Origin: Lepidodermella squamata | Taxonomy: Eukaryota; Animalia; Gastrotricha | Assembly: GCA_047495785.1 (NCBI GenBank) | Contig: JBLDXI010000012.1 | Coordinates: 186,001-250,000, forward strand | Direction: 5' to 3' | Length of the DNA: 64,000 nucleotides | In this document: positions 12,052 through 58,977 of the stretch, one piece after another | Position numbering within the stretch: the first letter of the stretch is position 1 | Layout of the letters: every line of letters starts with the position of its first letter | The notes under the pieces: model-generated | Database searches by the model: none | Told to the model about the DNA's origin: nothing | What the model saw: only the letters and a program-made list of their open reading frames with translations | Translations under genes and position numbers: made by a program

Positions 12052-12378
12052 CTAGGCAATATCTACGAGGAATTTTCGTAATCGTTGGTCGATTCTGCGG
12101 AATTTTTCTTCAGTGGACACTCCGCTGTTGTCTGGCAGCCGCTTCAATATCGGTAAGGTTCTGAGAGCTGCCGGGACGAATCGCGATTTCGAAAATATTC
12201 TCTGAGGAACCGTTGAATCTATCGCAATAGGAGGGTCGAAGCCGATTGGTCGCAACAAGTCGTTGCTTGGTAGAAAATTCATAGAACTCAACTGTTGCCG
12301 GTATGGCGGATTCCAACTAGCAGGAGCCCCCAAAGCTCCGGCGAGTAAAAATACAAAAATCACGTAGATATTGAGCAT
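12052..12378 (-). CDS. Secreted peptide precursor, VPAA family
   Basis: aaaATG at 12378; signal peptide MLNIYVIFVFLLAGALG; SRFVPAALRTL; KR/RR sites. Confidence 0.85.
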   Translation of the reverse strand: MLNIYVIFVFLLAGALGAPASWNPPYRQQLSSMNFLPSNDLLRPIGFDPPIAIDSTVPQRIFSKSRFVPAALRTLPILKRLPDNSGVSTEEKFRRIDQRLRKFLVDIA

Positions 12379-12602
12379 TTTCCTGCGCAATGAGGCTAAA
12401 TTCCCGGGCCCATATATACCCAGGTGTTTTGCGGATATCAACCGAAGCATGTAACGAATAATAATTGATAGTGCCCGGGGTCATCGTCTGGCCAGTCACG
12501 CGGAAAAACGCAATTCTCAATACAGTCGATCTTTTAATTGAGATTCAAGGGAATTCACAAACAAAATAATGGATAATTTTATATAGAGGTGTTGACCATT
12601 AT

Positions 12603-12857
12603 TCAAGCTCTGATGTAGTAGACCACCTTTCCTGTTCTGTCCAGCATTTTCAGGGCGGCTGGGACATTGCGAGCTCTGAAGAAGGGTCGAGTAGTTGTAG
12701 TAGTTGTTGTAGTTGCTTCAACGATTGGCTCAGGAGGCGTCGTCTTCACTGGAAACGGGCCGAGTCGCACGTCATTCAACTCGGCAGACTCCGAGTCGTG
12801 ATCCCATGCTTGGATGACAGTTACAGCTAAAACGAAGAAAAACAATTGCCGAAGCAT
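12603..12857 (-). CDS. Secreted peptide precursor, VPAA family
   Basis: Signal peptide MLRQLFFFVLAVTVIQA; poly-Thr; ARNVPAALKML; TATAAAA ~60 nt upstream. Confidence 0.85.
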   Translation of the reverse strand: MLRQLFFFVLAVTVIQAWDHDSESAELNDVRLGPFPVKTTPPEPIVEATTTTTTTTRPFFRARNVPAALKMLDRTGKVVYYIRA

Positions 12858-13113
12858 TTTTTTGCGCCAATCTGAAAAAAAATTGAATTCGCACCGGTTT
12901 TCTATTCGTCCTCTTTTATATTAAGTCGGGGCGGTCTTATAATCAAAGCTTCCGCTTAGCCCACTTGCATAAATGACCGCGACGCTTAGATAATTCCATA
13001 ATAACGCATGGGCGATAATTGGAAAAGGATTCGCATTATTTATCAAGAAAAAAATGTGTGTCAAAAATGCGTTTTATTTTATTATAATATTTTTTTTCAT
13101 ATGCAAGTATGGT

Positions 13114-13344
13114 TTAGTAACGATGGTGATGCTTCCGGTATTGCGGGGTTAAATTGCGTTGATACTCCTCGTCATCGGTCAGACTCCTCTCCGGCAGTTT
13201 TCGATGCTTTCGCCACGATAACGGAAGGAAGATGCGACTTGCAAATTCAGCCATGTCGTCCTCGTCCGAATCTTCAATCGGCCGGCTTGAAGCAATGTCC
13301 CACAATAGAATGATAAGGAGGGAAATTATAATACAAATTTTCAT
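13114..13344 (-). CDS. Secreted precursor, acidic spacer plus cationic/His-rich peptides
   Basis: Signal peptide MKICIIISLLIILLWDIASS; EDSDEDD..WRKHRK..DDEE..RKHHHRY. Confidence 0.85.
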   Translation of the reverse strand: MKICIIISLLIILLWDIASSRPIEDSDEDDMAEFASRIFLPLSWRKHRKLPERSLTDDEEYQRNLTPQYRKHHHRY

Positions 13345-13569
13345 TTTTTCAGCTGAAATAAATGTGATTTAAGAACATTTTTTACTGGCGCCACGGCCCT
13401 CAGGGTGCTGTTCGGTCATTCTTTCGCTATTTCGTGACGAGATGTTTTTCTCATGCGTCATCATGACTGACCACCGACTCAAGAGACATGGTGTCTTTAA
13501 TATATTATTTATTTTTTTGATATTATTTTATTATACCATTCGTCAGCAAAATATGAGGATGCACTGCTG

Positions 13570-13881
13570 TTACTCATCGAGTTCATCGTAAGCTGAAATG
13601 AACTGGGCGAGATTGTTAGCCAGAAAAGTCGGGGATGAAGATCGTTTCGGGACCCAGAGCGTTTTCGCAGCAGCCGGGACGAACTTGGGCCGGTAAACCA
13701 CTTGAGCCGCCTCAGCGGAAGGATTTTGCGCCGCTGAGACGACGATTACCGGCTTTGGATTTCTCATCAGGCGAGGGTCGTCGAATTCTGAATCCTCATC
13801 CTCATGTGCCCATCCTTGAACCAGTGCCACAGAAGCTGCCAGGAAATAAGCGAAGAATAATAAGGTGAAGAATCTAGCCAT
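13570..13881 (-). CDS. Secreted peptide precursor, VPAA family
   Basis: ATG at 13881; signal peptide MARFFTLLFFAYFLAASVALVQG; PKFVPAAAKTL. Confidence 0.85.
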   Translation of the reverse strand: MARFFTLLFFAYFLAASVALVQGWAHEDEDSEFDDPRLMRNPKPVIVVSAAQNPSAEAAQVVYRPKFVPAAAKTLWVPKRSSSPTFLANNLAQFISAYDELDE

Positions 13882-15351: not shown

Positions 15352-15870
15352 TCAGATGAACCTATCCGCCGCTGGCGTGAAAACGTAGAACGAGCCTTCG
15401 GTAGGGCCGGCAGTGTGATGATGACGCGGCTGAGGCCCTCGCAGTACATACCGAATCGGGCCTGTTCGCGGCTTTGCCACCGTGATATCGCCGCTCTTTT
15501 TCGATATCAGGAAATCATTACCATTCGCCACGTATTTCGCCTCGAAATCATCCGGCTCGATCAGGAAAATTGTATTATCGTCATCGTCGTCTTCAATTAT
15601 GTTCTTCAAGTAAGGACTGCTATCAGCAATTAGGTACTCCTCATCCAGGGGCGAGTAGGTAGGACCGTTATCTTCGAATGAATCGTATTCAGGATAGACC
15701 TCGGGCGATCGTTTCATTAGCAGATGATACAGATCGTCAGGGTTACCAATCGGCTGTCTGGCTGGTCGGAAGCTACTGACTCGACCTGACGGGCCAAACG
15801 GCTGTCTGATGAAGAAGGCCGATGCGCAGCCGATGACACTGAGTAAAATTGGGGTTGAAAAAGACAGCAT
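15352..15870 (-). CDS. Secreted acidic precursor
   Basis: Signal peptide MLSFSTPILLSVIGCASA; KR and KK sites; poly-Asp. Confidence 0.85.
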   Translation of the reverse strand: MLSFSTPILLSVIGCASAFFIRQPFGPSGRVSSFRPARQPIGNPDDLYHLLMKRSPEVYPEYDSFEDNGPTYSPLDEEYLIADSSPYLKNIIEDDDDDNTIFLIEPDDFEAKYVANGNDFLISKKSGDITVAKPRTGPIRYVLRGPQPRHHHTAGPTEGSFYVFTPAADRFI

Positions 15871-17792: not shown

Positions 17793-17984
17793 TCAGACAA
17801 ACATGTTCTTGATGATGCGTTGGCGAATGTTGACCGGGACCGGAATGATCGGTTCATCGCCTTCGAAATTCGAGCTAGCCTTCGGCTTGGTTCGCACCGT
17901 CTCGCCGTAACGAGCTTCGGCTGAGAAGAAGAAAACAGCCGACAGGACCATCATAGCCAGAAAAATGACATTGAAGCACTTCAT
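17793..17984 (-). CDS. Secreted peptide, EARY family
   Basis: aaaATG at 17984; signal peptide ending AEA then RYGET. Confidence 0.85.
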   Translation of the reverse strand: MKCFNVIFLAMMVLSAVFFFSAEARYGETVRTKPKASSNFEGDEPIIPVPVNIRQRIIKNMFV

Positions 17985-18974
17985 TTTCGAAAATTTCGCA
18001 GTTGGATCAAAATACAAAAGAAAATTCTAGAAAAATCGAAAAATAGAGAATGGCTGTTGAATTGTCTAACTATTGGTTTCTAGCTAATGTTTTCTCGGCA
18101 ATCAAAAAACCGCTTGAAACAGATGCGCATTAGAAATATATTATTGACACGATTGGGAAAATAGAGTGAGATAATATCTTTGAATGACTGCGCAATGGAT
18201 ATAAAATATTGATATAATGGACTTTGCGTCACAAAATATCGAAACGTCCCACTGATTTTGTTTTTCATTACCCGAGATTTTCGTTCTGGATGATGAGGAT
18301 TTCAGAACGACGACGCTCTGTGGGTGTTCACGTTATAATATAGATTCGTTTGAATTAAAAGCCGCAATAAAAGGCGCGTATACTATCACGCGATCAGGAT
18401 GATTTTTTTTTCGCGCACCACAAGCGGCAAGTTAATTAACAACGCGGCTAGCCTGAAAGCTGATAATCTTGCAATTTGCATCGATTGGTAACGCACTGAA
18501 AATGAATCAATGGAAAAAAATACTGGGCCTGCGATTAAACTATAAGTGAAGGGTGAATATAAAGCGAAGCGGTGGTGGGGAAAGCTTCAAGAAATTTCCA
18601 TCCATCGGAAGTTCACCTCACTGCGTCATTGCCCGGCAGGAAATATATACTTAACACGCTATAGGATTTGTTTACTTCTGGTAGCTCTCAAAATTAAGCA
18701 CGACAAGCTCTTAATTTATATCAAAAGCTATAAAACGTGGTTTGATTTTTTTCAAACCCGACTTTCGGCTTCTCATTTCCGGATTAGACGATTTGGACAA
18801 AAATTCAGCTCGCAGGGTGGTAATTTCCTTATGTCCGTCTGATAAATAAGTCAAGCGTGGTGAGGCGTGATAATTTTCAGGGTCATTTTTCCTGCAGTTT
18901 TATTAATCATATTAAAGGTAGTGCAAAAACTACTGCAGAATTAGAGTCTAGACAATGTCTGGGCGATTCGTTGC

Positions 18975-19247
18975 CTAGCTTCGCTTAGGCTTAATCGCTT
19001 TGCCGTAACGAGATCGTTCCACATAAATCCTGCGATTCATTACTTCGTCCAAGTCATCGTCATTCTCAGCATTTCTGAGAGCCGATCGCCAAGCCTTCGG
19101 GTTGACCTTGGTTTCCGGACCAACCGAAGCCAGAGGTGCATCATCCAGTTCCCGCCACAGGGTCTCGGCATACCGAGCTTCAGCCATAGCTACAATAACC
19201 ATCAAGGCGATGAAGAGAATCTGCATAATTTTCAAGGTTGCCTGCAT
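18975..19247 (-). CDS. Secreted precursor, EARY family, with RYamide candidate
   Basis: Signal peptide ending AEA then RYAET; RR-IYVERSRY-GK; alternative start at 19226. Confidence 0.85.
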   Translation of the reverse strand: MQATLKIMQILFIALMVIVAMAEARYAETLWRELDDAPLASVGPETKVNPKAWRSALRNAENDDDLDEVMNRRIYVERSRYGKAIKPKRS

Positions 19248-19582
19248 TCCAGATGCTAATTCGTAAAATTCTGCGGTAAAATTTGAACTTCGCCGCCGAA
19301 ATTCGACTTCGCTTAAGAAGCGGATGTATGAAGACCACTTGAGTTGGCGATGTATTCAAAGCCGAGATTATGACAAAAAAATGAATTCTCATTACAGCCA
19401 AGCAGGAAAATGGGTTTTTTGTCCCTGGAGGCCACCATTGGCAGAATCCAGAAATATCGTAGGAGTTTGAATAGCTTGGCTTTTCATTAAAGTCAAAAGG
19501 GGTCAAACTTGAAAAACTTTTATTAACGGTTAAAATAACGATATATAATTAAATGTTATTAGCAGTTCATTATAGAAGAAGT

Positions 19583-19945
19583 TCACATGAGTTCAGCCAA
19601 ATTGCCTCGATGACCTTTCGGCAATTTACGGTAATCTTTTTTCTTTTTCAGCGAATTTTTCTCACGAACACCTTGCCCGGCCTGCAGTTGATGCAACTTG
19701 CTGTTAGTAATGCCGGCCATTGTATCGCTATTTGCTCCATATCGCTCTTCGTAAGTGGCTTGAAGCTTTCGAAGCATTTTAACCATCGAAGCTTTTGTGG
19801 CCGCCGAGGGGCGAAGGGGGTTGCCCTTGGTGTCTACCTCGTCGACATCGTCCCTGAAAGCTTCAGCATAACGAGGCTCAGCTAGGTGAATAGTAGCTAA
19901 AACCACGATAGTAGTCAAAGATAGAAGTCGATAAATTTTTTTCAT
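19583..19945 (-). CDS. Secreted precursor, EARY family
   Basis: Signal peptide MKKIYRLLSLTTIVVLATIHLAEP then RYAEA. Confidence 0.85.
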   Translation of the reverse strand: MKKIYRLLSLTTIVVLATIHLAEPRYAEAFRDDVDEVDTKGNPLRPSAATKASMVKMLRKLQATYEERYGANSDTMAGITNSKLHQLQAGQGVREKNSLKKKKDYRKLPKGHRGNLAELM

Positions 19946-20421: not shown

Positions 20422-20619
20422 ATGCGAGCATATTTTGCGATTTTATTGCTAATCGTCGCCATGGCAACTTGCGTTCAAAGCGATCCGATAGTCTTAGTGA
20501 GGCTGCCAGGAGCTGGCGTCGACGAGCTGGTTGAGGATGACATCAATGATGATGACGTCTACGACTTTCGAGGCACTGAAGACGTTAATAACCGATTTAT
20601 GAATATTTTATTAAGGTGA
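20422..20619 (+). CDS. Secreted acidic peptide (V[YF]DF..ED..NN.R.M.ILL pair)
   Basis: aaaATG; signal peptide MRAYFAILLLIVAMATCVQS. Confidence 0.85.
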   Translation: MRAYFAILLLIVAMATCVQSDPIVLVRLPGAGVDELVEDDINDDDVYDFRGTEDVNNRFMNILLR

Positions 20620-21437: not shown

Positions 21438-21680
21438 TTATAATAGTATGCTCATGAGGCGGCCGTTGTTCGCCATGTCTTCACTGTCCCAGAAGTCGAA
21501 AACAGTTTCATCTTCGCCATCGGTTTGCAGCTGTTTAGCTGCCTCGAGCAAGTCTCGCTTCGCCTCGTTGTCGTACAAGTCGTCAAGACCCTCGTAATCA
21601 GGCACAGGATTCGCCGCATCCAGACGGATTAGGACAATAGCGATCAGTAGTATAATCGCAACGACCAGTCGTTGGAACAT
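21438..21680 (-). CDS. Secreted acidic peptide precursor (pair with 20422)
   Basis: ATG at 21680; signal peptide MFQRLVVAIILLIAIVLIRLDA; KR site. Confidence 0.85.
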   Translation of the reverse strand: MFQRLVVAIILLIAIVLIRLDAANPVPDYEGLDDLYDNEAKRDLLEAAKQLQTDGEDETVFDFWDSEDMANNGRLMSILL

Positions 21681-27398: not shown

Positions 27399-27650
27399 CT
27401 ATTCCTGTTCTAGAAATTGCGTCTCACCCTGGGATAAACGAAGGTGTCTAACAAAATCTTCCATTATCTTCAGTTTTCGCTCAGTCGGTACGTCTGCCTC
27501 CTCTGAGCTGAAATCTTCGAGATCGATGTTAGCGAAGTTAGGATCCTGGAACCTGCGGAATGAATCTCCAAAGCGAGCCTCGCTATTTTGCAGAATCAGT
27601 GCGCCAATGAAAAAGAGGAAAATTAGCTGAATAACAATTCGACCTGACAT
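27399..27650 (-). CDS. Secreted peptide precursor, EAR[FY]-like
   Basis: Signal peptide ending SEA then RFGDSF; TATAAAAA ~65 nt upstream. Confidence 0.85.
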   Translation of the reverse strand: MSGRIVIQLIFLFFIGALILQNSEARFGDSFRRFQDPNFANIDLEDFSSEEADVPTERKLKIMEDFVRHLRLSQGETQFLEQE

Positions 27651-30176: not shown

Positions 30177-30512
30177 TTAATCTTCCAATTCGGCGATATC
30201 AGCGCCTCGAGCTTGATGAGGCCTGAAATATTTGATGAGAATATTGTTGATAAGGCTGTTGTTATCAACTTCGCCGTCATTCAGCTCGGCTTCGGTCATG
30301 AAACGCGAATTTTTCGCAGCCGCGCCTCGTTTTCGCAGGTAGGAATCGAAGACCTGTTTGCCGAGGGAAATGCCCTGATAGGGAATACCAGACTCGCCTG
30401 AATTTTCCTGCTGCTTTTGATTAGCCTGTAAGAAGCGAGTTCTATAGCCGAAAGCATTCGCCTCGACCAGCAGAACGGCGAGTGAAAGCACTAAGATCAA
30501 CTTAACAGACAT
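30177..30512 (-). CDS. Secreted peptide precursor
   Basis: Signal peptide MSVKLILVLSLAVLLVEANA; RKR site. Confidence 0.87.
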   Translation of the reverse strand: MSVKLILVLSLAVLLVEANAFGYRTRFLQANQKQQENSGESGIPYQGISLGKQVFDSYLRKRGAAAKNSRFMTEAELNDGEVDNNSLINNILIKYFRPHQARGADIAELED

Positions 30513-31107: not shown

Positions 31108-31509
31108 TCAGTCTTTGCTGGTGCAAGGTGGCCAGTAGCACGTATGCCGTTGCGAGTTGACTCGTGCAGCTATAGCCGCTTGTTGCGAGTTGACTCGTGC
31201 AGCTATAGCCGCTTGTTGCGATTCCTTCCTCGCCTTTTGCGCCTTAGTGCTGCTACCGGCTAGGCCTCGCTTCATAGCCAGAATCTCCTCGCTGTCTCCA
31301 GCGGGAGGTAGGGCGAAAAATCGCTTTTCGGCTGTTTCAGCGCTCCACGGCCACGAAAATCGCTTGTCGAAAAATGAGTCATCGTCGTTATTTTTCTGAA
31401 CAGGTTTCCCGCCAAAAGCAGGTGGCACATATTGAAACCTGGCCTCTGTGTAGGCCAAAACCAGCATGAATAAGCATGCTAGACCGATAAAAAAACGGAC
31501 GGTCAGCAT
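31108..31509 (-). CDS. Multi-peptide prohormone with C-terminal CYWPPC ring
   Basis: Signal peptide ending TEA; three KR sites; 11-aa exact repeat; C-terminus HTCYWPPCTSKD. Confidence 0.9.
   Translation of the reverse strand: MLTVRFFIGLACLFMLVLAYTEARFQYVPPAFGGKPVQKNNDDDSFFDKRFSWPWSAETAEKRFFALPPAGDSEEILAMKRGLAGSSTKAQKARKESQQAAIAARVNSQQAAIAARVNSQRHTCYWPPCTSKD
31149..31221. repeat. Exact 33-bp in-frame tandem duplication (SQQAAIAARVN x2)
   Basis: GTTGCGAGTTGACTCGTGCAGCTATAGCCGCTT x2 plus a partial copy. Confidence 0.95.
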
Positions 31510-34164: not shown

Positions 34165-34479
34165 TCAAGGCATCGCTCTGAATTTGCGGCAATTTCGTTT
34201 CGCCTTTCGCCGCATGAAGTTTTGCTTCGCTTCAGTTCTGCCGTGAATTTCGTTCTCGAAAAATTGCCGAACTTTATTTCGAAGTGCGGGGTGGCGGACA
34301 TCGAGCAGATCAGCCATTTCATCTTCCATACCGCTGATTTCTTCGTTCCGGCGAAGATCCTGGACCATGACTCGCCTCGTCCTAGGCAAGCTGCTCATTG
34401 CGAAGGTAGCTCGAGCCTCGACTTTAACCAGAACCAAAATAGCTAAAATTGCAGCGATGATAAAACAATTCAGTAACAT
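34165..34479 (-). CDS. Secreted basic precursor
   Basis: Signal peptide MLLNCFIIAAILAILVLVKVEA; several RR/KR sites. Confidence 0.85.
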   Translation of the reverse strand: MLLNCFIIAAILAILVLVKVEARATFAMSSLPRTRRVMVQDLRRNEEISGMEDEMADLLDVRHPALRNKVRQFFENEIHGRTEAKQNFMRRKAKRNCRKFRAMP

Positions 34480-36113: not shown

Positions 36114-36502
36114 TGTTCTTTTGTTAAAATGATCTCGCACATTTTAGTCACCCATATAAGAGGAGGTGTCAATCAATGCGTAGTAGAAGCACTTTGGTTA
36201 TAATTTATGCACTGAAAAACAATTCAGCGTGCGATTATCAGAGGGGGACTGGGCGGATCATCCCCAGCCAGTCCAGAAAAGAAAACATTTAAAACGTTTT
36301 AGAGCAGCTTTCAGCGGAAAATCTTCACTCGTATTCTTGGTTCAAATTACTTATAAAGTATCCTTGATGGCACCGTGAAAACGAAAACAATGACCCGAAA
36401 ACGAAAAATTATTTTACTGGTCACAAAACTAGTCTACATAGAAACATTTCACCCGTTACTATGGTTCAAAAAGTTTGAACGCCTCTTCGTTTTGTATCGA
36501 GA

Positions 36503-37144
36503 TTATTCCAAAATGTCGGTTTCATCTTCTGCCGTTTCTTCAGATCGCTTCTGAATATTGCTGTTATATTTCGATTCTGGCGCGTTGAAAAACCCGTAGC
36601 TGTAATCGGCCGGTTCAACTGGACGAACAGGCGGGGTTGTTTCTTCCTCGCGCTTTTCATACTCGTAGAATGAATCGTAATTCAACGAATTGCGCTGATT
36701 CATCATCTTCGCCAGAATATCGTCCAGGCCTTTATTATTCGGGCGGGTTTTAAGGTGGCTCGCTAGCATTTGAGGCGCTGGTTCTAGATCGGAGTAGTCG
36801 TTATTATTCGAAACTGACCGCTTTTTACGCTTCTCGGCAAACGAGTCGTAGTGAATCTGGTCGTTTTTAAGGAATCGGTGTCGATCCAGCAGGGTTTGGA
36901 TGAAAGCTGGGTCAACGCCGTTTGCGGCCAGAAATTCCGCAACAGCCGCTGCCTCGTTGGCTGTGTTAGATCTTTTTTCGTAGTACGAGTCATAATGAGC
37001 CACATCACCCCTCAGAAATTGCTGCTGAGTCATCAAATATCTAAAAATTGCCTCATCAATCGACTGCATCTCCTCCTGAAAGCTTCCCTGGCACATGAGA
37101 GCCAGAATAGTGGCGAAAATCGAAATTAGAGACGAGTAAAACAT
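36503..37144 (-). CDS. Multicopy prohormone, FLx5H[YF]DS[YF] peptide family
   Basis: Signal peptide; three related peptides each ending at EKR: HYDSYYEKR, HYDSFAEKR, NYDSFYEYEKR; RKKR site. Confidence 0.92.
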   Translation of the reverse strand: MFYSSLISIFATILALMCQGSFQEEMQSIDEAIFRYLMTQQQFLRGDVAHYDSYYEKRSNTANEAAAVAEFLAANGVDPAFIQTLLDRHRFLKNDQIHYDSFAEKRKKRSVSNNNDYSDLEPAPQMLASHLKTRPNNKGLDDILAKMMNQRNSLNYDSFYEYEKREEETTPPVRPVEPADYSYGFFNAPESKYNSNIQKRSEETAEDETDILE

Positions 37145-37893
37145 TCTAGAACTCTTGCAAAGAAATGATGATGAAGTTGAAAGTAAAAAAGTGGCTCAGC
37201 CGAATATAGTAACCTGTATTTTTGCGTCTGAGAAATCAAATGAAAGCCGAGTATATGCTTGGGCGAGAAGGCGTGGTATCACTATGCCTAGTTATAATTA
37301 AGTTACGCTATATGAGACATCCTGTTCGTTTACGACATCAGCTCACGGATCGTTCAACACAGTACATAGCTAGCCCATACCGTCTGCGGAGGCATCTATT
37401 TCCTGGCGAAAGGAGATTATTCACATTTTTTAAGTCGATTTGCTTCTTTCAAGCAAAAAAACAAGTGCCTGAAATTCTCAATGAAAAATATTGCTCAATC
37501 ACGAAAATTGCCCCTGAAAAATGTACCGAGCTGAAATTCCTGTAAAAAGAGGCGTGTTTACAGGCACTTATCATCATCAAACTTGTATTAAGTATATATT
37601 GGTGATGGGGAGTGTTTTCGATGGTTGGATCTGCAGTCGAATAGTCCGAGGAATTTCAGGAAAAATAAGTTGTTGAATCGAATTCCTTCAAATTAATTGT
37701 CGAGGAATGTCACCGCTGGTTCATGGTCTCAAATTTCACCCGAAGTTGACCTGGAAATGTTTGATTATCACCTTTAGTTGCATTCTAGAATTCAGGAAAC
37801 CGTGAGGGAGAAAAAAATCGGTACCTATATGTCAGCTTGATTTTATTAACAATTTGTTAACTATAATAATGTCTCGGTTTTTCGCTAAATATA

Positions 37894-38055
37894 CAGCGTA
37901 GCCAAACAATTCCGCAGGAGGCGAATTCGATGCGCATCATTTTAATAAGGAGTTTCATTGGCAAAAGAATGCTTGAAATTCTTCAACTTCTTAAAACTCC
38001 TAATTAAATTGATGCGCATCGAATTCGCCTTTTGCGAAATTTTTTGGCCACCCTG
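37894..38055. mobile_element. Hairpin MITE with Tc1/mariner-like ends
   Basis: ~62-bp imperfect arms CAGCGTAGCCAAACAATTCCGCAGGAGGCGAATTCGATGCGCATCA.. / ..TGATGCGCATCGAATTCGCCTTTTGCGAAATTTTTTGGCCACCCTG; TA at left flank only. Confidence 0.7.
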
Positions 38056-38178
38056 TTGACTAGATTCTTTCATTTGATTGTCTTTTGATCGAGTCAGGAA
38101 GGACAAATTTCAACAACACTGCAATTGCCAAATTTTGCACAAATTTACCATGCCAGTTAATGTTATGTGAAAATGGCA

Positions 38179-38385
38179 TCAATCATAATCCATCGGAGGC
38201 TTCCCGTTTTCTTGCCAAAACAGCTGCATTGGACCGCCCTTGTCAAAGTTTGCGTCGTCATGCGTTGGATGATTCATTAGGGCGTAGTGGAAGGTCATAG
38301 ATCGCTTTGCGATATTGCAGGTGGCAAAACCCAGAACAACGGCCAGTAGGACAAGGCAAAGTTGGAAAAAGTACTTAACGAACAT
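38179..38385 (-). CDS. Secreted peptide precursor
   Basis: ATG at 38385; signal peptide MFVKYFFQLCLVLLAVVLGFATC; KR site. Confidence 0.82.
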   Translation of the reverse strand: MFVKYFFQLCLVLLAVVLGFATCNIAKRSMTFHYALMNHPTHDDANFDKGGPMQLFWQENGKPPMDYD

Positions 38386-38827
38386 ATTGTTCAAATTGTT
38401 ATGAAGCACGAAATCCGGAGTAATTACATACCAATGAAATAGGACTAAGGACTATCGAATGTCCTGAAATTTGCCGTTTAATCTCATGACAATACTGCTA
38501 AAAATAGAAATAATATATCTTTTGGATGGAAATCAAAATTCCAGATGCGTCATTCCCCTGTCATGCGATGACTTGTTATTGTTGTTTTTGGCAGGCTTTG
38601 GCAAAATTCAGAAGCGTCAAATTACAAAACATGGGCCTTTAATGAATGTAAAGGCTAATAATACGGCTACTCCGTGCGAATGTGGGATGTCCCATTGCCT
38701 TTTGCGTCAGCCATTTTTTGCCGTTATACATGGCAATTATGTGGCTGGAGCCCAAAACAAACAATCCTGGTTTATCATGCATCATGAGAGACTAAGATCT
38801 TGTAATTAGCCACGCCCAATTTCGGAG

Positions 38828-38834
38828 TATAAAA
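38828..38834 (+). promoter_or_regulatory. TATA box of the DUF1566 gene
   Basis: GTATAAAAGG about 60 nt upstream of ATG 38892. Confidence 0.55.
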
Positions 38835-38891
38835 GGACCCTGTAAAAATATGGTGACATAATCTGTTTTCTCAAGATTTGAACCAGTGAAA

Positions 38892-40037
38892 ATGGCCTTG
38901 TTATTTCTGTTTATGATCTGCTTCTCGCGGCAAAGTGCTGCCGCAGCTGGGTTGACGTACCCTATCGTCGACACTGGTGTTCAGGACTTCACTAACGATA
39001 TCACGTACATATCAAAGCCGAACCCAGGCCAGGCTTACTACGGCCAGGATGGCAAATACCAAGGAAATCAACCCAGTTACAAGGACAACAATGACGGAAC
39101 CGTGACTGACCTCGTTACAGGTCTCATGTGGCAGAAGTCGATGGGCAGCAAGATGACCTATAACTCGGCGCTTAGTGCCGCTAAAACCTCACGCGTCGGA
39201 AATTACGCTGACTGGAGGGTCCCGACTATCAAGGAACTGTACTCCCTAATCCTGTTCACCGGTCAACTTGGCCCGAATGCTGCGTCGAAAAAGTTCATCG
39301 ACGATTACTTCGATCAACCCTATGGCAATACTTCAGCAGGCGAGCGGGACATTGATGCGCAAACTCTGAGTTCGACAATGTATCAAGGCTACGTCTTCGG
39401 CAACACTCAATGCAACTTCGGCGTCAATTTTATCGATGGTCGAATCAAATGCTACCCGCGCCACATGCCTTTCTACTTCAGATTTGTCCGCGGCTCGACC
39501 AACTACGGATTGAACGACTTTGTTTCAAACAAAGACGGAACAGTCTCTGATCGGGCGACTGGTCTAGTCTGGCAGCAGTCTGATAGCGGTAAGGGCATGG
39601 AGTGGAAAGATGCCTTGGCCTATTGCGAGAGCCTTGTCCTGGCTGGCCGGGATGATTGGCGTCTCCCGAACGCGAAGGAGCTGCAAAGCTTGGTCGACTA
39701 CAACCGAGGCCCGCAATCGACGAACACCGCCGCAATCAACCCGCTGTTCTCCGCCACTTCGATACCTGTGCCCAGTGGAGCGGCAAGTGCGTCGTCAGAG
39801 TTTGCTTTCTACTGGACCGGAACGACGCATAAGGACGGTCCTCAGCCTAATTTGGCGGCTTATGTGGCGTTTGGTCGTGCCTATGGCAAATCTTCGTCTG
39901 TTATTGACGTTCACGGCGCTGGTGCGCAGAGAAGTGACCCCAAAAGCACTCGGGGTCAAACTTACCCGCAATATTTCGGCCCTCAGGGTGACTTGAGGAC
40001 CGTCTACAACTTTGCACGATGCGTTCGAAACGCCTGA
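38892..40037 (+). CDS. Secreted tandem DUF1566 (Lcl C-terminal domain) protein, prokaryote-type
   Basis: Signal peptide; YPIVDTG..YYGQDG; two copies of NxDGTVxDxxTGLxWQ..WRxPxxKELxSL; C-terminal GAGAQRSDPK..GPQGD..YNFARCVR; intronless; AATAAA at 40123. Confidence 0.9.
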   Translation: MALLFLFMICFSRQSAAAAGLTYPIVDTGVQDFTNDITYISKPNPGQAYYGQDGKYQGNQPSYKDNNDGTVTDLVTGLMWQKSMGSKMTYNSALSAAKTSRVGNYADWRVPTIKELYSLILFTGQLGPNAASKKFIDDYFDQPYGNTSAGERDIDAQTLSSTMYQGYVFGNTQCNFGVNFIDGRIKCYPRHMPFYFRFVRGSTNYGLNDFVSNKDGTVSDRATGLVWQQSDSGKGMEWKDALAYCESLVLAGRDDWRLPNAKELQSLVDYNRGPQSTNTAAINPLFSATSIPVPSGAASASSEFAFYWTGTTHKDGPQPNLAAYVAFGRAYGKSSSVIDVHGAGAQRSDPKSTRGQTYPQYFGPQGDLRTVYNFARCVRNA

Positions 40038-40425
40038 AACTTCCAAACCATTTCCGTACAATAACTTAATGTACGCTGTTGATAAGCTGCTGATGAAATA
40101 ATATAATGCTGTGTCTCTTTTGAATAAAATTGGTTTTTTTCAATATTCAGCTCAGGATTTTTCAACCTTAAATTTCTGTCTCACCGCTTATAAGATCCTA
40201 CTCAAGTTAGGGGCGATTTGCTTTGATTTCGTCCAAGGAAAAGCAATCCATTGAGATCTAGATTAAATTGCTGAAACGAATTTCATCGTGCAAAACCTTG
40301 GCAAGAAATCAAAATGGAAAAAGAGAGTGAGGATGGGCTCCGAGGATCCAGCATAATATTCAAAAACACTGACGCTGCTCAGGCAAATCAATTTTTATTG
40401 CAATATATAATAGTTAAAATTCAAG

Positions 40426-40680
40426 CTATCGTCTTTTCTCGTTGTAATACGAATCGAAATGGATTTTAGGCCCAGTTAAAAAACGCTGATTAAGCTCCTT
40501 CATCACTTTGGACCACTTCGGAGGTCGCATTGCGACTGGAATTCCGTGGCCAATGTCCAATCCGTCTGGCATTTTAATTTTGAATCGCATCTGGCCGTTG
40601 GTCATCGCTAGCAGATCTAAAATTAGAAGACCTGTTATCAATGTTGACGCCGATTTTTCCAGCATTCTTTCAATTATCAT
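40426..40680 (-). CDS. Secreted precursor, FLx5H[YF]DS[YF] family
   Basis: Hydrophobic LITGLLILDLLAMTNG; C-terminal FLTGPKIHFDSYYNE-KRR; start may be 40665. Confidence 0.82.
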   Translation of the reverse strand: MIIERMLEKSASTLITGLLILDLLAMTNGQMRFKIKMPDGLDIGHGIPVAMRPPKWSKVMKELNQRFLTGPKIHFDSYYNEKRR

Positions 40681-41800
40681 AAAATTCTAATCGGAAAATT
40701 CCAAAGTTTTTCAAAAATAATAATTCAGGCCTAAGAGACGGAAATAGTAACAAATTTGTCTGAATTTTCTTGTCTGAAGTCTGAGTTGAATGAGTTTGTT
40801 TATAACTTGTCAATGACTCATTCTATGCCAAAAGTGACAATTGGCTTAGGAAACGCGATACTGCGCATTCCTGCGACAATCAATGCGACAAAAAATATTT
40901 CTCCGCTATTTTGGGAGCTAATATTTCTATAGTTGATAGCTACTTAAATATGTACGTCCATATAGTCGCAAATGAGTGATGAAAACTGACAGGACATCAA
41001 TTGACCGCATCCGATGTGCGTTGAAACCAGGCCGAAACAAGGGAACAAGTGAGTGGGCATCCTTCATTCAATTTAACATCGAACAAAAGCGTGTTTTTAT
41101 GTTTTCAAGTTCAAACTCCCATTCACGATAAATGTCAGATGGTGACCTTTCCTCAGGCGTGTTGCTGTCATCGGGAAACGTTTCGTCAGCTTTCATGCTC
41201 GAAAGACATCACGTTGATTCTGAATCAATATATTTCATATCGTCGTTCGCAGAATGAAGACAATTAAAATTTAGTCACGAAAGGTTCCTGAACCTAATGC
41301 CCCAGCTATGCTGAATTTAGCTCAATCCGACAATTTAAAAAGTATGCCTATTAATAATTTATTATTCAGTACCAGAATTCTGTGAAGGAGATGATTCATA
41401 GGCAATTCAATTAATGCGCGACTATCAGCGCGCAACCATTATCAAGAATCCGAACTAGTTTTTTCTTCCTACCTGGGGAATCCCAGATTTCCGGCAGAGC
41501 TAATAATAGATAATAGCTATAATAATGAAATGATATCCGAGCGAACTCGTGAAGCTTACCGCCCACTCTGACTTTCCGCTGCCGTCAATTTACAGCCTAA
41601 ATAGCTCGATATTTTATGAATGAAATGCCACCCCCATGGGTCATTAGACTGAACTTATAACGCCCCAGCTATATGTGTTGTAGTTACAAACACGTGAAGA
41701 ACAGCGCGCAGACAATCGATTTCAAAATAGCCGGCGAATGAGTTGCAGATTTTGTCCTAGACGTGAGAATTTTCTTAAATCTTCATAAACAACTTCATAA

Positions 41801-41864
41801 GTAAGTTGTCTCCAAATTGCTGGAACAAGTATTGAATATTGCTATTTTATTCTTATAATTTCAG
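41801..41864 (+). other. Probable 64-nt 5'UTR intron of the 41874 gene
   Basis: GTAAGT ... ATTTCAG ending 9 nt before the ATG. Confidence 0.6.
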
Positions 41865-41873
41865 CTTAACGAA

Positions 41874-42152
41874 ATGATCAGCATTTTGAATTTAATCCTG
41901 ATTGGTTACCTGTTTGACTTGGTCACTGGCCGACCTACTACTACTTCTGGCGAGCTCGGCCAACAATTTGCACCATTGCCCAACAAGCGACAGTCGATAG
42001 ATAGACCAACGCGATTTGGCAGGAAAATATCTTCCATCAACGATAGAAAAGTTAAGCAGATTCAAATAGTCATGTCCCACCGCCTGCAGCCTGCCCCTCC
42101 TTCCAATGCTTACATCATGCGACAACAAATCAGGGAACAAGCTAAAAGCTGA
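41874..42152 (+). CDS. RFamide neuropeptide-like precursor (pQSIDRPTRF-NH2)
   Basis: Signal peptide MISILNLILIGYLFDLVTG; KR-QSIDRPTRF-GRK. Confidence 0.85.
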   Translation: MISILNLILIGYLFDLVTGRPTTTSGELGQQFAPLPNKRQSIDRPTRFGRKISSINDRKVKQIQIVMSHRLQPAPPSNAYIMRQQIREQAKS

Positions 42153-42206
42153 TGTATATAGGTCTTTATTATGTGATATAAATTATTCAAGCTTGATGGA
42201 ACTTTT

Positions 42207-42515
42207 CTAGTTATTATTAAAAGATATGAAACTGTTCTGTTTTTTGTTCAATAGAGTTTGCACGGAATTCCCATCATCCTTCTTTGTTTTCTTGAGAGGT
42301 AGTCGTTTCCGGCCGATTTTGCTGTTTTTTTCCTGATATTTCGGGCGGAAAACTTTTGTTTTAGATGATCGGCGTTGTTGCTGATGAAGTATTGCATCTA
42401 TTTGCCGTTTAGCCACTCGCTCGAATACCAAAATTGTAAAGCAATTGGCAACTTCGAAATTCGCATGAATAAGAAAAATTCCCACAACGGCTAAGAAAAA
42501 TGCAATTCGACGCAT
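42207..42515 (-). CDS. Secreted basic precursor (KR..QQQRR..LNKKQ pair)
   Basis: Signal peptide MRRIAFFLAVVGIFLIHA; KR, RR and GRKR sites. Confidence 0.83.
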   Translation of the reverse strand: MRRIAFFLAVVGIFLIHANFEVANCFTILVFERVAKRQIDAILHQQQRRSSKTKVFRPKYQEKNSKIGRKRLPLKKTKKDDGNSVQTLLNKKQNSFISFNNN

Positions 42516-43070
42516 TTTTTGTCCTTTGGTTATAAATCAGGAGAAAATCCAATAGTTGATTATTCGCAACATCTCAGACGGTTTTTTCGGAGATGTAACT
42601 TGTGACTATAGAGCACGCATCCACAACAGGTGTATTTTCGGTGAATTTTAATTTTCCCCGCATTTTAAGGAGTGTGTTGATCTCGCCAATGCACTGCTAT
42701 ATGAGAGCCGCATGACCACGGTGACGCAATGCAACTGATGACGACACATCATTCGAGAAAAATCACTTGACCAGCACAGCCGGGCAAAACTGACCCGCGG
42801 AAATTCGGCATTCGGAACCAGCATTGAAGAATAGCAGCGAAATTATCGAACGAGTTAATATCCGGTCTAATTTAAGAATAATGCGTGGGATTAGCAGTTT
42901 TTCGCTCTTTTTGCCGGCTTTTGTCGAAAACATGTCTATAACTAAAGCTCCGTGTGATCTGCGAGTCAATCAGGAAACGACAATTAATGGCCATTTTTTC
43001 CACTTCACGTGTCCCGATTGAGAATCGATGATATAAGTCCTGAGCTAAAAAATATTAGTACTCTAAAAAC

Positions 43071-43379
43071 ATGAATCATTCTATAACAATTTTAGTAGTT
43101 TTTTTACTAGTTTCCAGTTTTTTCGTTGAATCTTTGGAACTACAGAGTGCTCTCAACGGGTCGAAACGGCTTTTCTCCGGTAAAGGATCGGCTCTTTCAA
43201 AACAAAAGCAGAAGAAAGTTATCGAACGCCTCGAAAGATTCATGTGGCAAAAATCTCCGCTCACGCAAGCCGACATAAACAACCCTGCTAAAATACCATG
43301 GCATCTACGGAAAACCGCGGATGCTATCCTCATTCGTCGATTCAAAGCTCTGAGTAGCAAAAACAAGAAAACGCCTTAA
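43071..43379 (+). CDS. Secreted basic precursor
   Basis: Signal peptide MNHSITILVVFLLVSSFFVES; KR site; TATA-like site upstream; AATAAA at the stop. Confidence 0.87.
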   Translation: MNHSITILVVFLLVSSFFVESLELQSALNGSKRLFSGKGSALSKQKQKKVIERLERFMWQKSPLTQADINNPAKIPWHLRKTADAILIRRFKALSSKNKKTP

Positions 43380-43462
43380 TAAAAATAATTCAAATCTGAT
43401 GTTTTATTTGTTCCAATATCTATGTCTAAAACTTAACGAAAATGGTTGTAGATGACTGTTTA

Positions 43463-43726
43463 TTAAGTCGATCCTCGAAGACTATGCTTGGCTTGGGACG
43501 CTTCTCGTTCTGTAGACAACCATTTCGCTGATTTTGTCCCATCCAAAGATCTCAAGCTCAGCAGAATACGGCGACGTAGCTTGTTAGGCTTCCAATCTGA
43601 TAGACGACGGTTGCTCTCCGCTTCCATTCCAGCTTTCGATGGTTTCAACAACTCCTTGCTGGCCTTCGAGTCGCATAGCACGCATGCTACGCTCAGCAGT
43701 AGTAAGCAGATAGTTGCTTGATGCAT
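43463..43726 (-). CDS. Secreted peptide precursor
   Basis: Signal peptide MHQATICLLLLSVACVLC; RR and RRR sites. Confidence 0.83.
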   Translation of the reverse strand: MHQATICLLLLSVACVLCDSKASKELLKPSKAGMEAESNRRLSDWKPNKLRRRILLSLRSLDGTKSAKWLSTEREASQAKHSLRGST

Positions 43727-44042
43727 CTTTCAAATATAGTTATGTATTTTCTATCTTTTTTATGAATGGAATTTTAGCTAGACAGAGCGTAGTTTTCTGA
43801 CGTATATAGTCCGATTGTGGATGGATTGCATTTGCGTGATTGAAGTCTGTTTTTCTCAAGGTCACAAGATGCAATTTACGAGAAAATTGCGCCACGAATA
43901 AATGTATACCCGCGCGTCCCTTTGGAATAACAAAATAACTCACACCTACCCGAAATCATTTTTTCCGAGGTTATAACAATTCGATTTATTTATTAAGATT
44001 GATTGACGGCCAGACATGTCTCTAGGCTAATAAGTCAGTAAT

Positions 44043-44294
44043 TTATGAGTCGAAATGCACGTCTTTTTGTGCCGAGGCCATTCTTCGGCTCCGGTCGTAA
44101 AACGAATCGTAGTGAACGTCACGGCCGACTAGGAAGCCGGGTTTTCCACGCATAAGAGCGCGTCTCAACGTTTGGCTGGCCAGGTATTCGATATCTTTAT
44201 TAGTCAGGCGAATGTTGTTGACGTAACATTTGGAGAAGCAGCAACAAAACGAGATGACCAATGCGGCAGGCAAAATAATTGAAATTCTAGCCAT
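44043..44294 (-). CDS. Secreted precursor, FLx5H[YF]DS[YF] family
   Basis: Signal peptide MARISIILPAALVISFCCCFSKC; FLVGRDVHYDSFYD-RSRR; second truncated copy DVHFDS*. Confidence 0.86.
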   Translation of the reverse strand: MARISIILPAALVISFCCCFSKCYVNNIRLTNKDIEYLASQTLRRALMRGKPGFLVGRDVHYDSFYDRSRRMASAQKDVHFDS

Positions 44295-44724: not shown

Positions 44725-45057
44725 TCAAGTTTGATGCGTGTTTTTGGATTTATTCACCTTGGTTCTCTGCATTCCTTCAATAAGCCGGCGCCAGGTGTTC
44801 CCGTCCTGTTTTTTGTTAAGCATAACTTGAGGCCGAGATGGATCGGGAACAACCACGACTGGCATCCTTTGCCATTGCGCTTTCTCGATCTTATTCTCCG
44901 CAATCCGGTTCCTCCGCTGCTGTTGAAGTCTATTAGCCTTGAATATGCGCTTAGAAACTTCTTTCTCGTCTTCACTCGCCAACGACGAGAGGACTAGACT
45001 CAGCATTAGTAAGGCGATCCCCGCAGTCCGGTTAAAACACGAGCCGAAGTATTTCAT
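44725..45057 (-). CDS. Secreted basic precursor (KR..QQQRR..LNKKQ pair)
   Basis: Hydrophobic GIALLMLSLVLSSLA; probable 54-nt 5'UTR intron 45115-45062 (CAG|GTTAAT..TTTTCCCAG). Confidence 0.83.
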   Translation of the reverse strand: MKYFGSCFNRTAGIALLMLSLVLSSLASEDEKEVSKRIFKANRLQQQRRNRIAENKIEKAQWQRMPVVVVPDPSRPQVMLNKKQDGNTWRRLIEGMQRTKVNKSKNTHQT

Positions 45058-56187: not shown

Positions 56188-58977
56188 TCAGTTGTCTTGG
56201 TTAGTATGAACGCCGTTTAGGTTTAACCCAGCTTCAACGGATGAAACCATAGCTTTCGGTTTCCTCAGGCTAAATCCACCCCCAGCGAATCGCTCAGTCC
56301 TAGGACGGCCGACTAGGCTAGGTAGCCGGCGGCCAACTCGTGTTTGAACGAAGAGGTGCCGATTCACGGCACTGCTACCCTGCCTTTCCTGCATCGCCGC
56401 TTGTCTAAGGATGCTGAAGCCATTTTGTGTAGCTGTGTTCTTCTTCTTCTCGACAAAGTACTTCTTTTTAGCATCGGCTAATTCTTGAGCGATACGATCC
56501 ACCTCGAACTTCGTTTCATTGTCTCGCCGTTCGAACATGTTCAACTCGCCAGCCATCGCTTGCATTTGACGATTTTGTTTACGCAGAACCACTTGATAGC
56601 TTGAAATTTTGTCAGCAACTTCGAAGCCGGGTTGCTTGGCTAGAATTCGCTTCAACTCCAGATATAGACGATCTTTCTCCTCGATTATGTTATTGGCCTT
56701 CGCGAGCATTTGGACCTTGCGTATCAAACGCTTTTGTAGATACTGAGTTTTCTTGATGAGTTCGAATGCAGACGGGTCATGGCCCTCAAGTTTCCGCCAC
56801 CGATGGATATTAAGAGGGCGGCTGAGTTCTTCCTCTAGAGCTTTTGACCTGGCCCGCTCGCGGAGAAGTTCTCGATGCACATGGTAGTACTCATTCTTCA
56901 GCTCTTCAGATTCACGAGCAACTATTTTAGATTTCGTCAAGTCTCGTCGGAGGCGCCGTATTTCGATCTTAAGGAGGCGGATATCCTCGATTCGGTCGTG
57001 GTAAGACATTTCGCCCTTCCTCATTACCGATTGCTGTATCTTGATCTTCTCGTAGAGCAGAGCCAACTCATCGTTTCTTCGGATAAGCTGCGATCCAAGA
57101 ATGTCGCGTTCAGATGTGATATTTTCGATTTCTTTCTTTAGTTTCACGCAAGTTGCTTCACAATCTCGGATGATTCTCAGCAGTTTATTGCTCTCCATTT
57201 GTTGGCGTTGAATGTAGGACTTTGACTCCATCATCTGTTCCTTGATTCTGATCAGCTCAGTGCTCAACATGTCGCGCTCAGATGTGACGTTCTGCTTCTC
57301 GAGTCGTTCTTTCACAGTAACAGCCTCTCGGTCAGCAATTTCCTCTCGCAGTTGGTCGATGGTGTGATTAGTTACCAGTAGTTTCCGCTTCATCTCAGTC
57401 ATTTCATCTTGACTTTCCATCAAGTTCTTCGAGTACAAGTTGCGATCGCTTCGAACAGCTTCGTACAGATTCATTTGCTGTTTCACTTTAGTTTCGAGCT
57501 CTGCAAGCTTCTTCTTCAGGTCGAAGATTTCGTTCTCACGAACTTTGACCTCTTCCATGTAGGTGAGCGTCTTTTGGGTCAAATCAGCAGCTTCGTTGAT
57601 GTAGCGATCACGGTCTTTTTCTAGCTGGTAAATGATCTGCCGCTGCTTTTGTGCCTCGGCTCGGTAGTTGGCGATCTCGGCATCCATATGCCTCATGGTC
57701 TGATCACCAGCTTTGGCGATCGTGGCTTGCCTGACAGCCTCATTCGATGCTTTTCGCAGGTTCGAATCAATCAAGTCCCTTTCTCGAGCAGCATTGGCGA
57801 TTTGCTTACGATCAGCCTCCATCTGCCGCTTCATATTGTCAATAGTCTTCTCCAGTGTGGATATCTGCGTGGCGTACATTTCCTTTTCTTCGTCAGCTTC
57901 TTTCTTCGCCTCTTCTAGCAGATGAACCTTGCGTTGGAATGTATCGCGCTGGCGATTTATTTTTACGATCTCCATTTTTGCTGCCGTGATGTTCTCTTCA
58001 ACAGTTTTGTAAGCAGTTTTCAATTCCGTGAGCTCTTCAGTTGCTTTTACCGCTCGACTAGCCGCTTTATCGTAGTCCTCCTGAGCCTTCGCCAACTGCT
58101 CCTGAGCTAATTCGGCCTCTTTTTGCGATCGATCGGCAATGATTTTCTGCTCTTTAAACAGATATTCTTGCTGTTGCCGTTCTGATTTCAGTTTTTCAAG
58201 TTGTACTGATAGCGTTTTGATTTCTTCGCCTTTCGCCTCGGCATCTTCTTTTGTTTTACGCAGTTCAGTCTCTAGCTTTTCTCGCCTCCTTATCTCTCGC
58301 TGAATTTCGGCTTGCTTCGCCTGCATTTCGTAGGTCACCTGCAGAATTTTCCCGTTTAGATCTTGTCTTTCGTCTTGAAATTGCCGGGTGTCTTCGACTA
58401 TAGCCGCCATCTTCGTCTTCAAATCTTCGACTTCATTCTTCTTCTCCTCAACAGTTGCCTCGAGCTCGCTTTTCATTTTCATCAGGTCCTTGTAGGAAAA
58501 TTTGCCGTTAGCCATTTCGAAGCCGCCGCTGACCTCCAAAATTTTTGTCAACTTGACGATTTCAGCTTTCAGCTCAGTGATTTTCTCGCGACTGTTCTCC
58601 TCCTTCCGCTTCATGTCGTCAATCATGTCCCACGCGCGTTTGTTCTCGCGCTGCAGCGACGTAATCGAACTCGCTTCATCGGCCAATGCAGCCACTCTCG
58701 ACGTGTTTTTGATCAGCTCGGCGTGTAGATCGCGGCATTTGTTCATCAGCCGCTTTTCGGCCTCTCGGCTCTTCTTCAGCGCCCGGTAGAGCCTTTCATA
58801 TTCGTGCTTTACGCGGTCAGACTTCTCAGTGCCAATAACTTCGGTAACAGCGACGTTGAACTCATGCACTAACTCTTCAAGCGTACTTTCGTCGACGCTG
58901 AGTTTGACATCGCCGATCGTGTCATCAATCCGCTCCTTACTCGACGACTTTCTAGACCGGTCCGAACTAGAAGACAT
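56188..58977 (-). CDS. CFAP58: Cilia- and flagella-associated protein 58 (CCDC147), intronless
   Basis: 929-aa coiled coil with CFAP58-family motifs YEAVRSDRNLYSKNL, ERDILGSQLIRRNDELALLYEKIKIQQS, ALEEELSRPLNIHRWRKLEG..LQKRLI. Confidence 0.9.
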   Translation of the reverse strand: MSSSSDRSRKSSSKERIDDTIGDVKLSVDESTLEELVHEFNVAVTEVIGTEKSDRVKHEYERLYRALKKSREAEKRLMNKCRDLHAELIKNTSRVAALADEASSITSLQRENKRAWDMIDDMKRKEENSREKITELKAEIVKLTKILEVSGGFEMANGKFSYKDLMKMKSELEATVEEKKNEVEDLKTKMAAIVEDTRQFQDERQDLNGKILQVTYEMQAKQAEIQREIRRREKLETELRKTKEDAEAKGEEIKTLSVQLEKLKSERQQQEYLFKEQKIIADRSQKEAELAQEQLAKAQEDYDKAASRAVKATEELTELKTAYKTVEENITAAKMEIVKINRQRDTFQRKVHLLEEAKKEADEEKEMYATQISTLEKTIDNMKRQMEADRKQIANAARERDLIDSNLRKASNEAVRQATIAKAGDQTMRHMDAEIANYRAEAQKQRQIIYQLEKDRDRYINEAADLTQKTLTYMEEVKVRENEIFDLKKKLAELETKVKQQMNLYEAVRSDRNLYSKNLMESQDEMTEMKRKLLVTNHTIDQLREEIADREAVTVKERLEKQNVTSERDMLSTELIRIKEQMMESKSYIQRQQMESNKLLRIIRDCEATCVKLKKEIENITSERDILGSQLIRRNDELALLYEKIKIQQSVMRKGEMSYHDRIEDIRLLKIEIRRLRRDLTKSKIVARESEELKNEYYHVHRELLRERARSKALEEELSRPLNIHRWRKLEGHDPSAFELIKKTQYLQKRLIRKVQMLAKANNIIEEKDRLYLELKRILAKQPGFEVADKISSYQVVLRKQNRQMQAMAGELNMFERRDNETKFEVDRIAQELADAKKKYFVEKKKNTATQNGFSILRQAAMQERQGSSAVNRHLFVQTRVGRRLPSLVGRPRTERFAGGGFSLRKPKAMVSSVEAGLNLNGVHTNQDN

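Follow-up and report, generated by a model that had tools for sequence, protein, structure and literature searches.

Introduction

What is to be made of a short amino-acid motif that recurs, with the same internal spacing, in three small and otherwise unfamiliar genes of an animal genome? The question is raised by a stretch of 64,000 nucleotides from the gastrotrich Lepidodermella squamata (contig JBLDXI010000012.1, positions 186,001 to 250,000, referred to here as the window and numbered from its own first letter), in which the motif FL-x5-H[YF]DS[YF] is found in the predicted products of gene 1 (36503-37144), gene 2 (40426-40680) and gene 3 (44043-44294), all on the minus strand. Here, we consider in turn how firmly the motif is established, how old its copies are, whether it has relatives, how the proteins that carry it might be processed and what the surrounding genes say about its role. 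Our preferred reading, to which we give about an even chance, is that genes 1-3 are old tandem paralogues encoding lineage-restricted secreted prepropeptides, that they belong to a giant array whose genes encode small secreted proteins and that their products are processed to non-amidated peptides.

There is little prior work against which to set such a family, as a literature search found no description of a gastrotrich neuropeptide or secreted-peptide complement, and the main text of the L. squamata genome paper makes no mention of neuropeptides, signal peptides or orphan genes (PMC11660948).

A motif shared by three precursor genes

A six-frame search of the 64-kb window with the regular expression FL.{5}H[YF]DS[YF] returns exactly four matches, all on the minus strand, equally spaced and distributed over three open reading frames (ORFs). 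With residue frequencies taken from all six frames of the window itself, chance would yield 0.0004 matches to this motif and 0.08 to the five-residue core H[YF]DS[YF]. The claim from which this work started, that of four equally spaced copies in three genes, is thereby borne out.

The copies are organized differently in each gene. Gene 1 encodes a 213-residue precursor with a signal-peptide-like start, three units and a series of KR, KRKKR, KR and KR sites. Its first motif copy (36983-37018, minus strand) reads FLRGDVAHYDSY and is followed by YE-KR, its second (36839-36874, minus) reads FLKNDQIHYDSF and is followed by AE-KRKKR, and its third (36668-36682, minus) is a degenerate NYDSF followed by YEYE-KR, in which SL replaces FL-x5 by an apparent four-residue deletion. 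Gene 2 encodes an 84-residue precursor, again with a signal-peptide-like start, and has a single unit, with the motif at 40447-40482 (minus) and the ending NE-KRR-stop. The 83-residue precursor of gene 3 has one full unit, with the motif at 44100-44135 (minus) leading into D-RSRR, and then a 12-residue tail, the end of which is the terminal variant DVHFDS-stop (44046-44063, minus). Both of the variants listed in the first-pass annotation, NYDSFYEYE-KR and DVHFDS-stop, could thus be placed.

The four full copies terminate in E-KR, E-KRKKR, E-KRR-stop and D-RSRR. When the degenerate copy is included, a basic site stands behind every one of the five units (KR, KRKKR, KR, KRR and RSRR), and in all five it is positioned two to five residues past the last aromatic residue of the motif, or three to six past the serine, despite heavy divergence elsewhere. 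The core common to the three genes can be written roughly as [QR]-FL-x-G-x3-H-[YF]-D-S-[YF]-Y-x-[ED]-basic. A hidden Markov model (HMM) built from the five units recovered no further copies in the window. Two other minus-strand ORFs contain core-like sequences, QVFDSYL-RKR in the ORF at 30177-30512 and EYDSFED in that at 15352-15870, but both were non-significant with the HMM and were set aside as remote relatives or chance resemblances.

Age of the copies and paralogy of the genes

The residues of the motif are identical between copies but the codons that specify them are not: phenylalanine is encoded by TTT or TTC, leucine by CTG, CTT, TTA or CTA, histidine by CAT or CAC, aspartate by GAC or GAT and serine by TCG or TCA. 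The first two units of gene 1, for example, agree in 10 of 18 residues but in only two codons. At the DNA level the sole match between loci spans 17 nucleotides, over the HYDSF codons, and a DNA-level duplication of the loci was set aside on this ground. Because the residues have been kept while the codons and the surrounding DNA have diverged, the copies must be old, and selection has held the amino-acid motif along with the basic site that follows it. This agrees with the proposal in the first-pass annotation that the motif is selected, the amino acids having been retained while synonymous sites are heavily diverged between the copies.

A different conclusion applies to the accompanying statement that the motif sits in otherwise unrelated precursors. 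Within gene 1 the repeat unit, of about 35 residues, is recognizable throughout, with 28-37 % identity between units. Genes 2 and 3, for their part, each have a companion small secreted-protein gene upstream, at 42207-42515 (minus) and 44725-45057 (minus), respectively, and these companions are paralogues of one another: their local alignment scores 60, where shuffles average 30.6 (standard deviation 5.6) and 0 of 500 attain that score, and they match by blastp at E = 0.001 within the array set. As genes 2 and 3 each adjoin one member of another paralogous pair, the arrangement points to a two-gene module that was duplicated in tandem. Taken together, the similarities indicate that genes 1-3 are diverged tandem paralogues, with genes 2 and 3 lying in the duplicated module, and the precursors can no longer be described as unrelated.

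Expression, constraint and the case against chance

Two public runs, here X1 and X2, were compared over 36300-42299. Run X2 acts as the genomic DNA of a heterozygous individual, with coverage throughout and many differences near half depth, a two-haplotype pattern that agrees with the published genome-wide heterozygosity of L. squamata, 2.99 % (PMC11660948). The GC (guanine plus cytosine) content of the window is about 41 %, that published for the genome being 43 % (PMC11660948). Run X1, on the other hand, acts as complementary DNA (cDNA): one contig end is a SMART-type adapter, a poly(A) contig end lies at 40143, 20 nucleotides past the AATAAA at 40123, one contig contains a 64-nucleotide GT..AG joint, and depth falls to zero across 40700-41499, where the depth of X2 exceeds 100.

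Gene 1 is transcribed, with an X1 depth of 90-258 over its ORF bins and contigs covering 36465-36712 and 36967-37129. It is also under purifying selection, since all nine of the haplotype differences listed for it are synonymous, an outcome with a joint probability of about 5e-7 in the absence of constraint, given the substitution types seen.

These data bear on the simplest rival explanation, namely that the motif recurs by chance or is a non-coding artefact, with genes 2 and 3 being short ORFs and not genes at all. ORFs of 80-90 residues are indeed common in DNA of 40 % GC, and cDNA support for gene 2 is almost lacking. Set against this are the 0.0004 matches expected, the conservation of residues over divergent codons, and the setting of the copies, every one of which lies in an ORF with a signal-peptide-like start and a poly(A) signal soon past its stop. 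In gene 2 an AATAAA is found at 40394-40399, 27 nucleotides past the stop, and in gene 3 at 43989-43994, 49 nucleotides past it; gene 3 is in addition preceded by an acceptor-like ttattttcag 1 nucleotide ahead of its ATG. Genes 1-3 therefore look real, and a chance origin of the family, which we hold to be extremely improbable, is effectively refuted.

The search for relatives

It had been suggested at the outset that the motif belongs to no known peptide family, and none of the searches made since has produced a credible match. Pfam gave nothing below E = 0.1 for gene 1 or the family. Word-indexed searches gave nothing at E <= 10, whether the query was gene 1 or an alignment that combined genes 2 and 3 with part of gene 1, and a search for the motif strings in 8.4 million papers yielded no peptide match. 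A profile of the five units, compared with 1.84 billion representative proteins, retrieved only two matches, both of which were judged spurious.

The first of these, P0001, carries NFLKNNTFN[HY]DSFA three times, but in a tandem-repeat ORF that lacks both basic sites and a signal peptide; the three near-identical tandem copies, at about 14 bits each, inflate its E-value, no encoding contig is on record, and the resemblance was put down to chance. The second match is a bacterial-type repeat protein.

How far this absence reaches depends on what the collections contain. An exact-sequence look-up of eight proteins from the window in a collection of 15 billion found none of them present, and because the window's own proteins are missing from it, the absence of relatives covers well-sampled phyla and says little about other gastrotrichs. 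Within that scope, the motif family looks like a new and previously undescribed one, apparently confined to its lineage.

Predicted secretion, processing and role

The first 30 residues of each of the three precursors include a hydrophobic core, uncharged over at least 10 residues, and a plausible cleavage site has small residues in its -1 and -3 positions; signal peptides throughout this work were called by such heuristics only. On the reading that we prefer, the signal peptide would route the product into the secretory pathway, where subtilisin-like proprotein convertases would cleave after the KR, KRKKR, KRR or RSRR behind each motif copy. A carboxypeptidase would then trim the basic residues, and non-amidated peptides of about 12-54 residues would be freed. 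The functional surface of these peptides would be their conserved C-terminal part, [QR]-FL-x5-H-[YF]-D-S-[YF]-[YA]-x0-2-[ED], and they would most likely act as extracellular ligands, whether as hormones, neuropeptides or pheromone-like signals. Cleavage, mature-peptide size and signalling role are all things that we infer from the gene sequences, and on the same footing a neuropeptide role is plausible.

A precursor need not be cut, however, and the same proteins could be uncleaved, largely disordered secreted proteins, for example of cuticle or scales, adhesive, mucus or egg envelope, in which the motif would be the place where binding, cross-linking or modification occurs. Such a protein would fit the single-sequence AlphaFold2 (AF2) model of gene 1, which has a confidence (pLDDT) of 41 and no fold or domain, a result equally expected of a processed precursor, as well as the richness of the motif in tyrosine, histidine, aspartate and serine, the very large size of the array and the lack of a cleavage site ahead of the motif. 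It accounts less well for the basic site retained behind five of five units when so much else has diverged, or for the KRR-stop ending of gene 2, which is the layout expected for processing by convertase and carboxypeptidase, and the proteins have no compositional bias of the structural-protein kind. We consider a structural role rather unlikely. Two further structural ideas were dropped, a folded repeat domain in gene 1 on account of the same AF2 confidence and an amphipathic helix upstream of the motif, for which the hydrophobic moment was not above that of shuffled sequences (0.09-0.70 of shuffles reach the maximum).

Several observations nonetheless weigh against processed prepropeptides as the answer. 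One is that no cleavage site is conserved before FL, the four full copies reading QQQ-FL, RHR-FL, NQR-FL and KPG-FL. Each predicted product consequently starts at the signal-peptide cut or behind the previous basic site and extends as far as the acidic residue that stands ahead of the next one, which gives peptides of 36, 46 and 54 residues for gene 1, one of about 52 for gene 2, and for gene 3 one of 46 (22 if an internal RR is used) plus the 12-residue tail. For want of a conserved site ahead of it, FL-x5-HYDS[YF] is not a discrete short peptide, and the first-pass annotation, which had presented the motif as a peptide family, has to be amended at the N-terminal boundary. Its statement that the copies end at basic sites and are not amidated agrees with the sequence, in which a basic site follows every copy; no glycine precedes that site in any of the five units, so that the signal for amidation, a common though not obligatory mark of neuropeptides elsewhere, is lacking. 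Gene 2 is nearly unrepresented in X1, at a depth of about 1.2-1.35, and gene 1 may have a nonsynonymous difference beyond those listed. About 60 genes of the same style per 64 kb, moreover, far exceed a classical neuropeptide complement and point to some other or broader secretory role.

Comparison by protein language model gave a lead in favour of the preferred reading. The neighbours of gene 1 are arthropod multi-copy neuropeptide precursors (0.82-0.87) and those of gene 3 are precursors of the PDH, DH31 and NPF types (0.87-0.92), but an array member without the motif, taken as a control, also has CAPA, PBAN and NPY-type neighbours. Because this motif-less control has neighbours of the same sort, the signal is a generic one, of the kind 'small prohormone-like secreted protein', and serves as a lead only, not as evidence of family.

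A more ambitious proposal can be built on the processed prepropeptides, namely that gastrotrichs have a signalling system of their own, for which the FL-x5-HYDS[YF] peptides serve as ligands. These would be long and non-amidated, perhaps modified on tyrosine or serine, and would carry a conserved C-terminal message, and the array as a whole would be an unusually large and rapidly diversifying repertoire of peptide signals in an animal whose neurons number only a few hundred. We offer this tentatively and think it possible but not likely. With regard to modification, most copies have an acidic residue three positions after the serine of the motif (S-x-x-[ED]). Sulfation of the motif tyrosines, raised in the first-pass annotation, is speculation: the residue at -1 of a sulfated tyrosine is usually acidic, and in the motif the first tyrosine has histidine there.

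The surrounding array

About 60-78 small ORFs with signal-peptide-like starts fill the window as a dense array of secreted-protein genes. It contains 78 signal-peptide-like ORFs of at least 60 residues, compared with a mean of 5.65 (maximum 9) in shuffled sequence and three in the reversed sequence, and 50 of 62 curated array ORFs have an AATAAA within 150 nucleotides past the stop, against 12.5 expected. Nearly all of the array ORFs, of 60-213 residues, are on the minus strand between about 4.9 and 47.3 kb and on the plus strand between about 47.6 and 63.1 kb, with a divergent switch near 47.4 kb, and genes 1-3 fall in the minus-strand block. In style the three genes match the rest of the array, each having a single coding exon, a signal peptide, small size and no outside relatives, as well as, in genes 2 and 3, an AATAAA of its own. 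They stand apart in that the three make up a recognizable sub-family in which a unit is repeated internally, most members of the array having no detectable similarity to others; pairwise similarity across the array is nearly nil, and FL-x5-HYDS[YF] is one of several small motif sub-families.

This setting lends weight to another explanation, in which the genes encode secreted host-defence or effector peptides, that is, a polypeptide cut at furin or dibasic sites whose parts have microbes, prey or conspecifics as their targets and not receptors of the animal itself. Immune and effector genes typically evolve in this manner, as a huge tandem array (those 78 signal-peptide-like ORFs against 5.65) that diverges fast and keeps hardly any similarity between its members. 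There are precedents in the nlp/cnc clusters of Caenorhabditis elegans and in Drosophila Baramicin, an immune gene that encodes a furin-cut multi-peptide secreted precursor and so demonstrates that such a precursor can serve immunity (PMC8423362, PMC9246212). The RSRR of gene 3 is likewise a furin-type site. The peptides predicted from gene 1, however, are acidic (net charge -3 to -5) and have no significant amphipathicity, unlike typical cationic antimicrobial peptides, and the motif is strongly conserved, not diversifying. A defence or effector role is accordingly one that we judge unlikely, if deserving of attention, and processed prepropeptides remain the reading that we prefer.

Other sub-families are apparent in the array. 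The sequence [RK][FN]VPAA[LA][RK][TM]L occurs in three neighbouring genes at 12052-13881 (minus); xEAR[YF] directly follows the hydrophobic core in about six genes, at 17793-19945, 27399-27650, 31108-31509 and 34165-34479 (minus); and the C-terminal endings NNRFMNILLR and NNGRLMSILL are found in a divergent pair at 20422-20619 (plus) and 21438-21680 (minus). A search upstream of array genes for a shared promoter motif gave no strong k-mer, only a modest excess of acceptor-like TTTCAG near the ATG. An acceptor-like T-Y-Y-N-AG lies within 10 nucleotides of the ATG in 11 array genes, genes 1 and 3 included, and one cDNA contig contains a 64-nucleotide GT..AG intron at 41801-41864 (plus), the acceptor of which is 9 nucleotides ahead of the ATG of a small secreted ORF at 41874-42152. 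Short introns in the 5' untranslated region, or spliced-leader acceptors, may be common in the array.

Three neighbours are of a different kind. The deepest feature of X1, at a depth of 400-1570, is a bacterial-type gene with an Lcl_C/DUF1566 domain at 38886-40143 (plus; Pfam E = 3e-43). As it has cDNA coverage and ends in poly(A) at 40143, 20 nucleotides past its AATAAA, we take it to be an expressed animal gene of eukaryotic style and not contamination. Between array genes at about 37900-38100, X2 depth reaches about 23,655, compared with some 50-150 in other places, and numerous loose ends fall at 37948-38056, which points to a short repeat of very high copy number. Finally, a homologue of CFAP58, of 929 residues and encoded by one uninterrupted ORF at 56188-58977 (minus; CFAP58_CC E = 2e-101), lies inside the plus-strand half of the array.

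Significance

If genes 1-3 turn out to be merely one more lineage-specific secreted family, the finding is an ordinary one. Its practical value would lie in the motif, which is constant over three old paralogues and stands beside conserved processing sites, a concrete candidate that can be synthesized and put to use in peptidomics, antibody staining and receptor screening. Since the FL-x5-HYDS[YF] family is among the few array members with a recognizable selected sequence, it also offers a practical handle on the function of the array.

Comparison with known systems

The layout of the three genes can be compared with several described systems, among them Baramicin. Like the gastrotrich genes, it has a secreted precursor with tandem conserved peptide copies split by furin or dibasic sites, and paralogues cut down to fewer units. 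It differs in that there is no homology between the two, and in that the gene 1 peptides are acidic.

Precursors of the pedal peptide/orcokinin type are non-amidated and multi-copy, and have features such as an x-F-D-S/E-I motif at the N-terminus of the peptide. The L. squamata family shares with them the absence of amidation, the multiple copies and a tripeptide of aromatic residue, aspartate and serine. Here, however, [YF]DS comes towards the C-terminal end, with the cleavage site directly behind it, and the rest of the consensus is missing; nor were any pedal peptide/orcokinin precursors recovered in the profile search of 1.84 billion representatives.

The broader likeness is to the multi-copy neuropeptide and prohormone precursors of protostomes, such as the FMRFamide-related peptides, allatostatin-A, NPLP1 and prohormone-2, which, like genes 1-3, have a signal peptide and a repeated conserved unit with a basic site behind each copy, contain spacers that vary and lack a globular fold. 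The gastrotrich family differs from these in its lack of sequence similarity, of amidation and of a site on the N-terminal side, and in the length of its predicted products. Peptide families that are specific to one lineage and have no outside similarity are, for their part, known among spiralians, a good example being the non-amidated AxxxDF peptides of nemerteans and brachiopods (PMC8557429).

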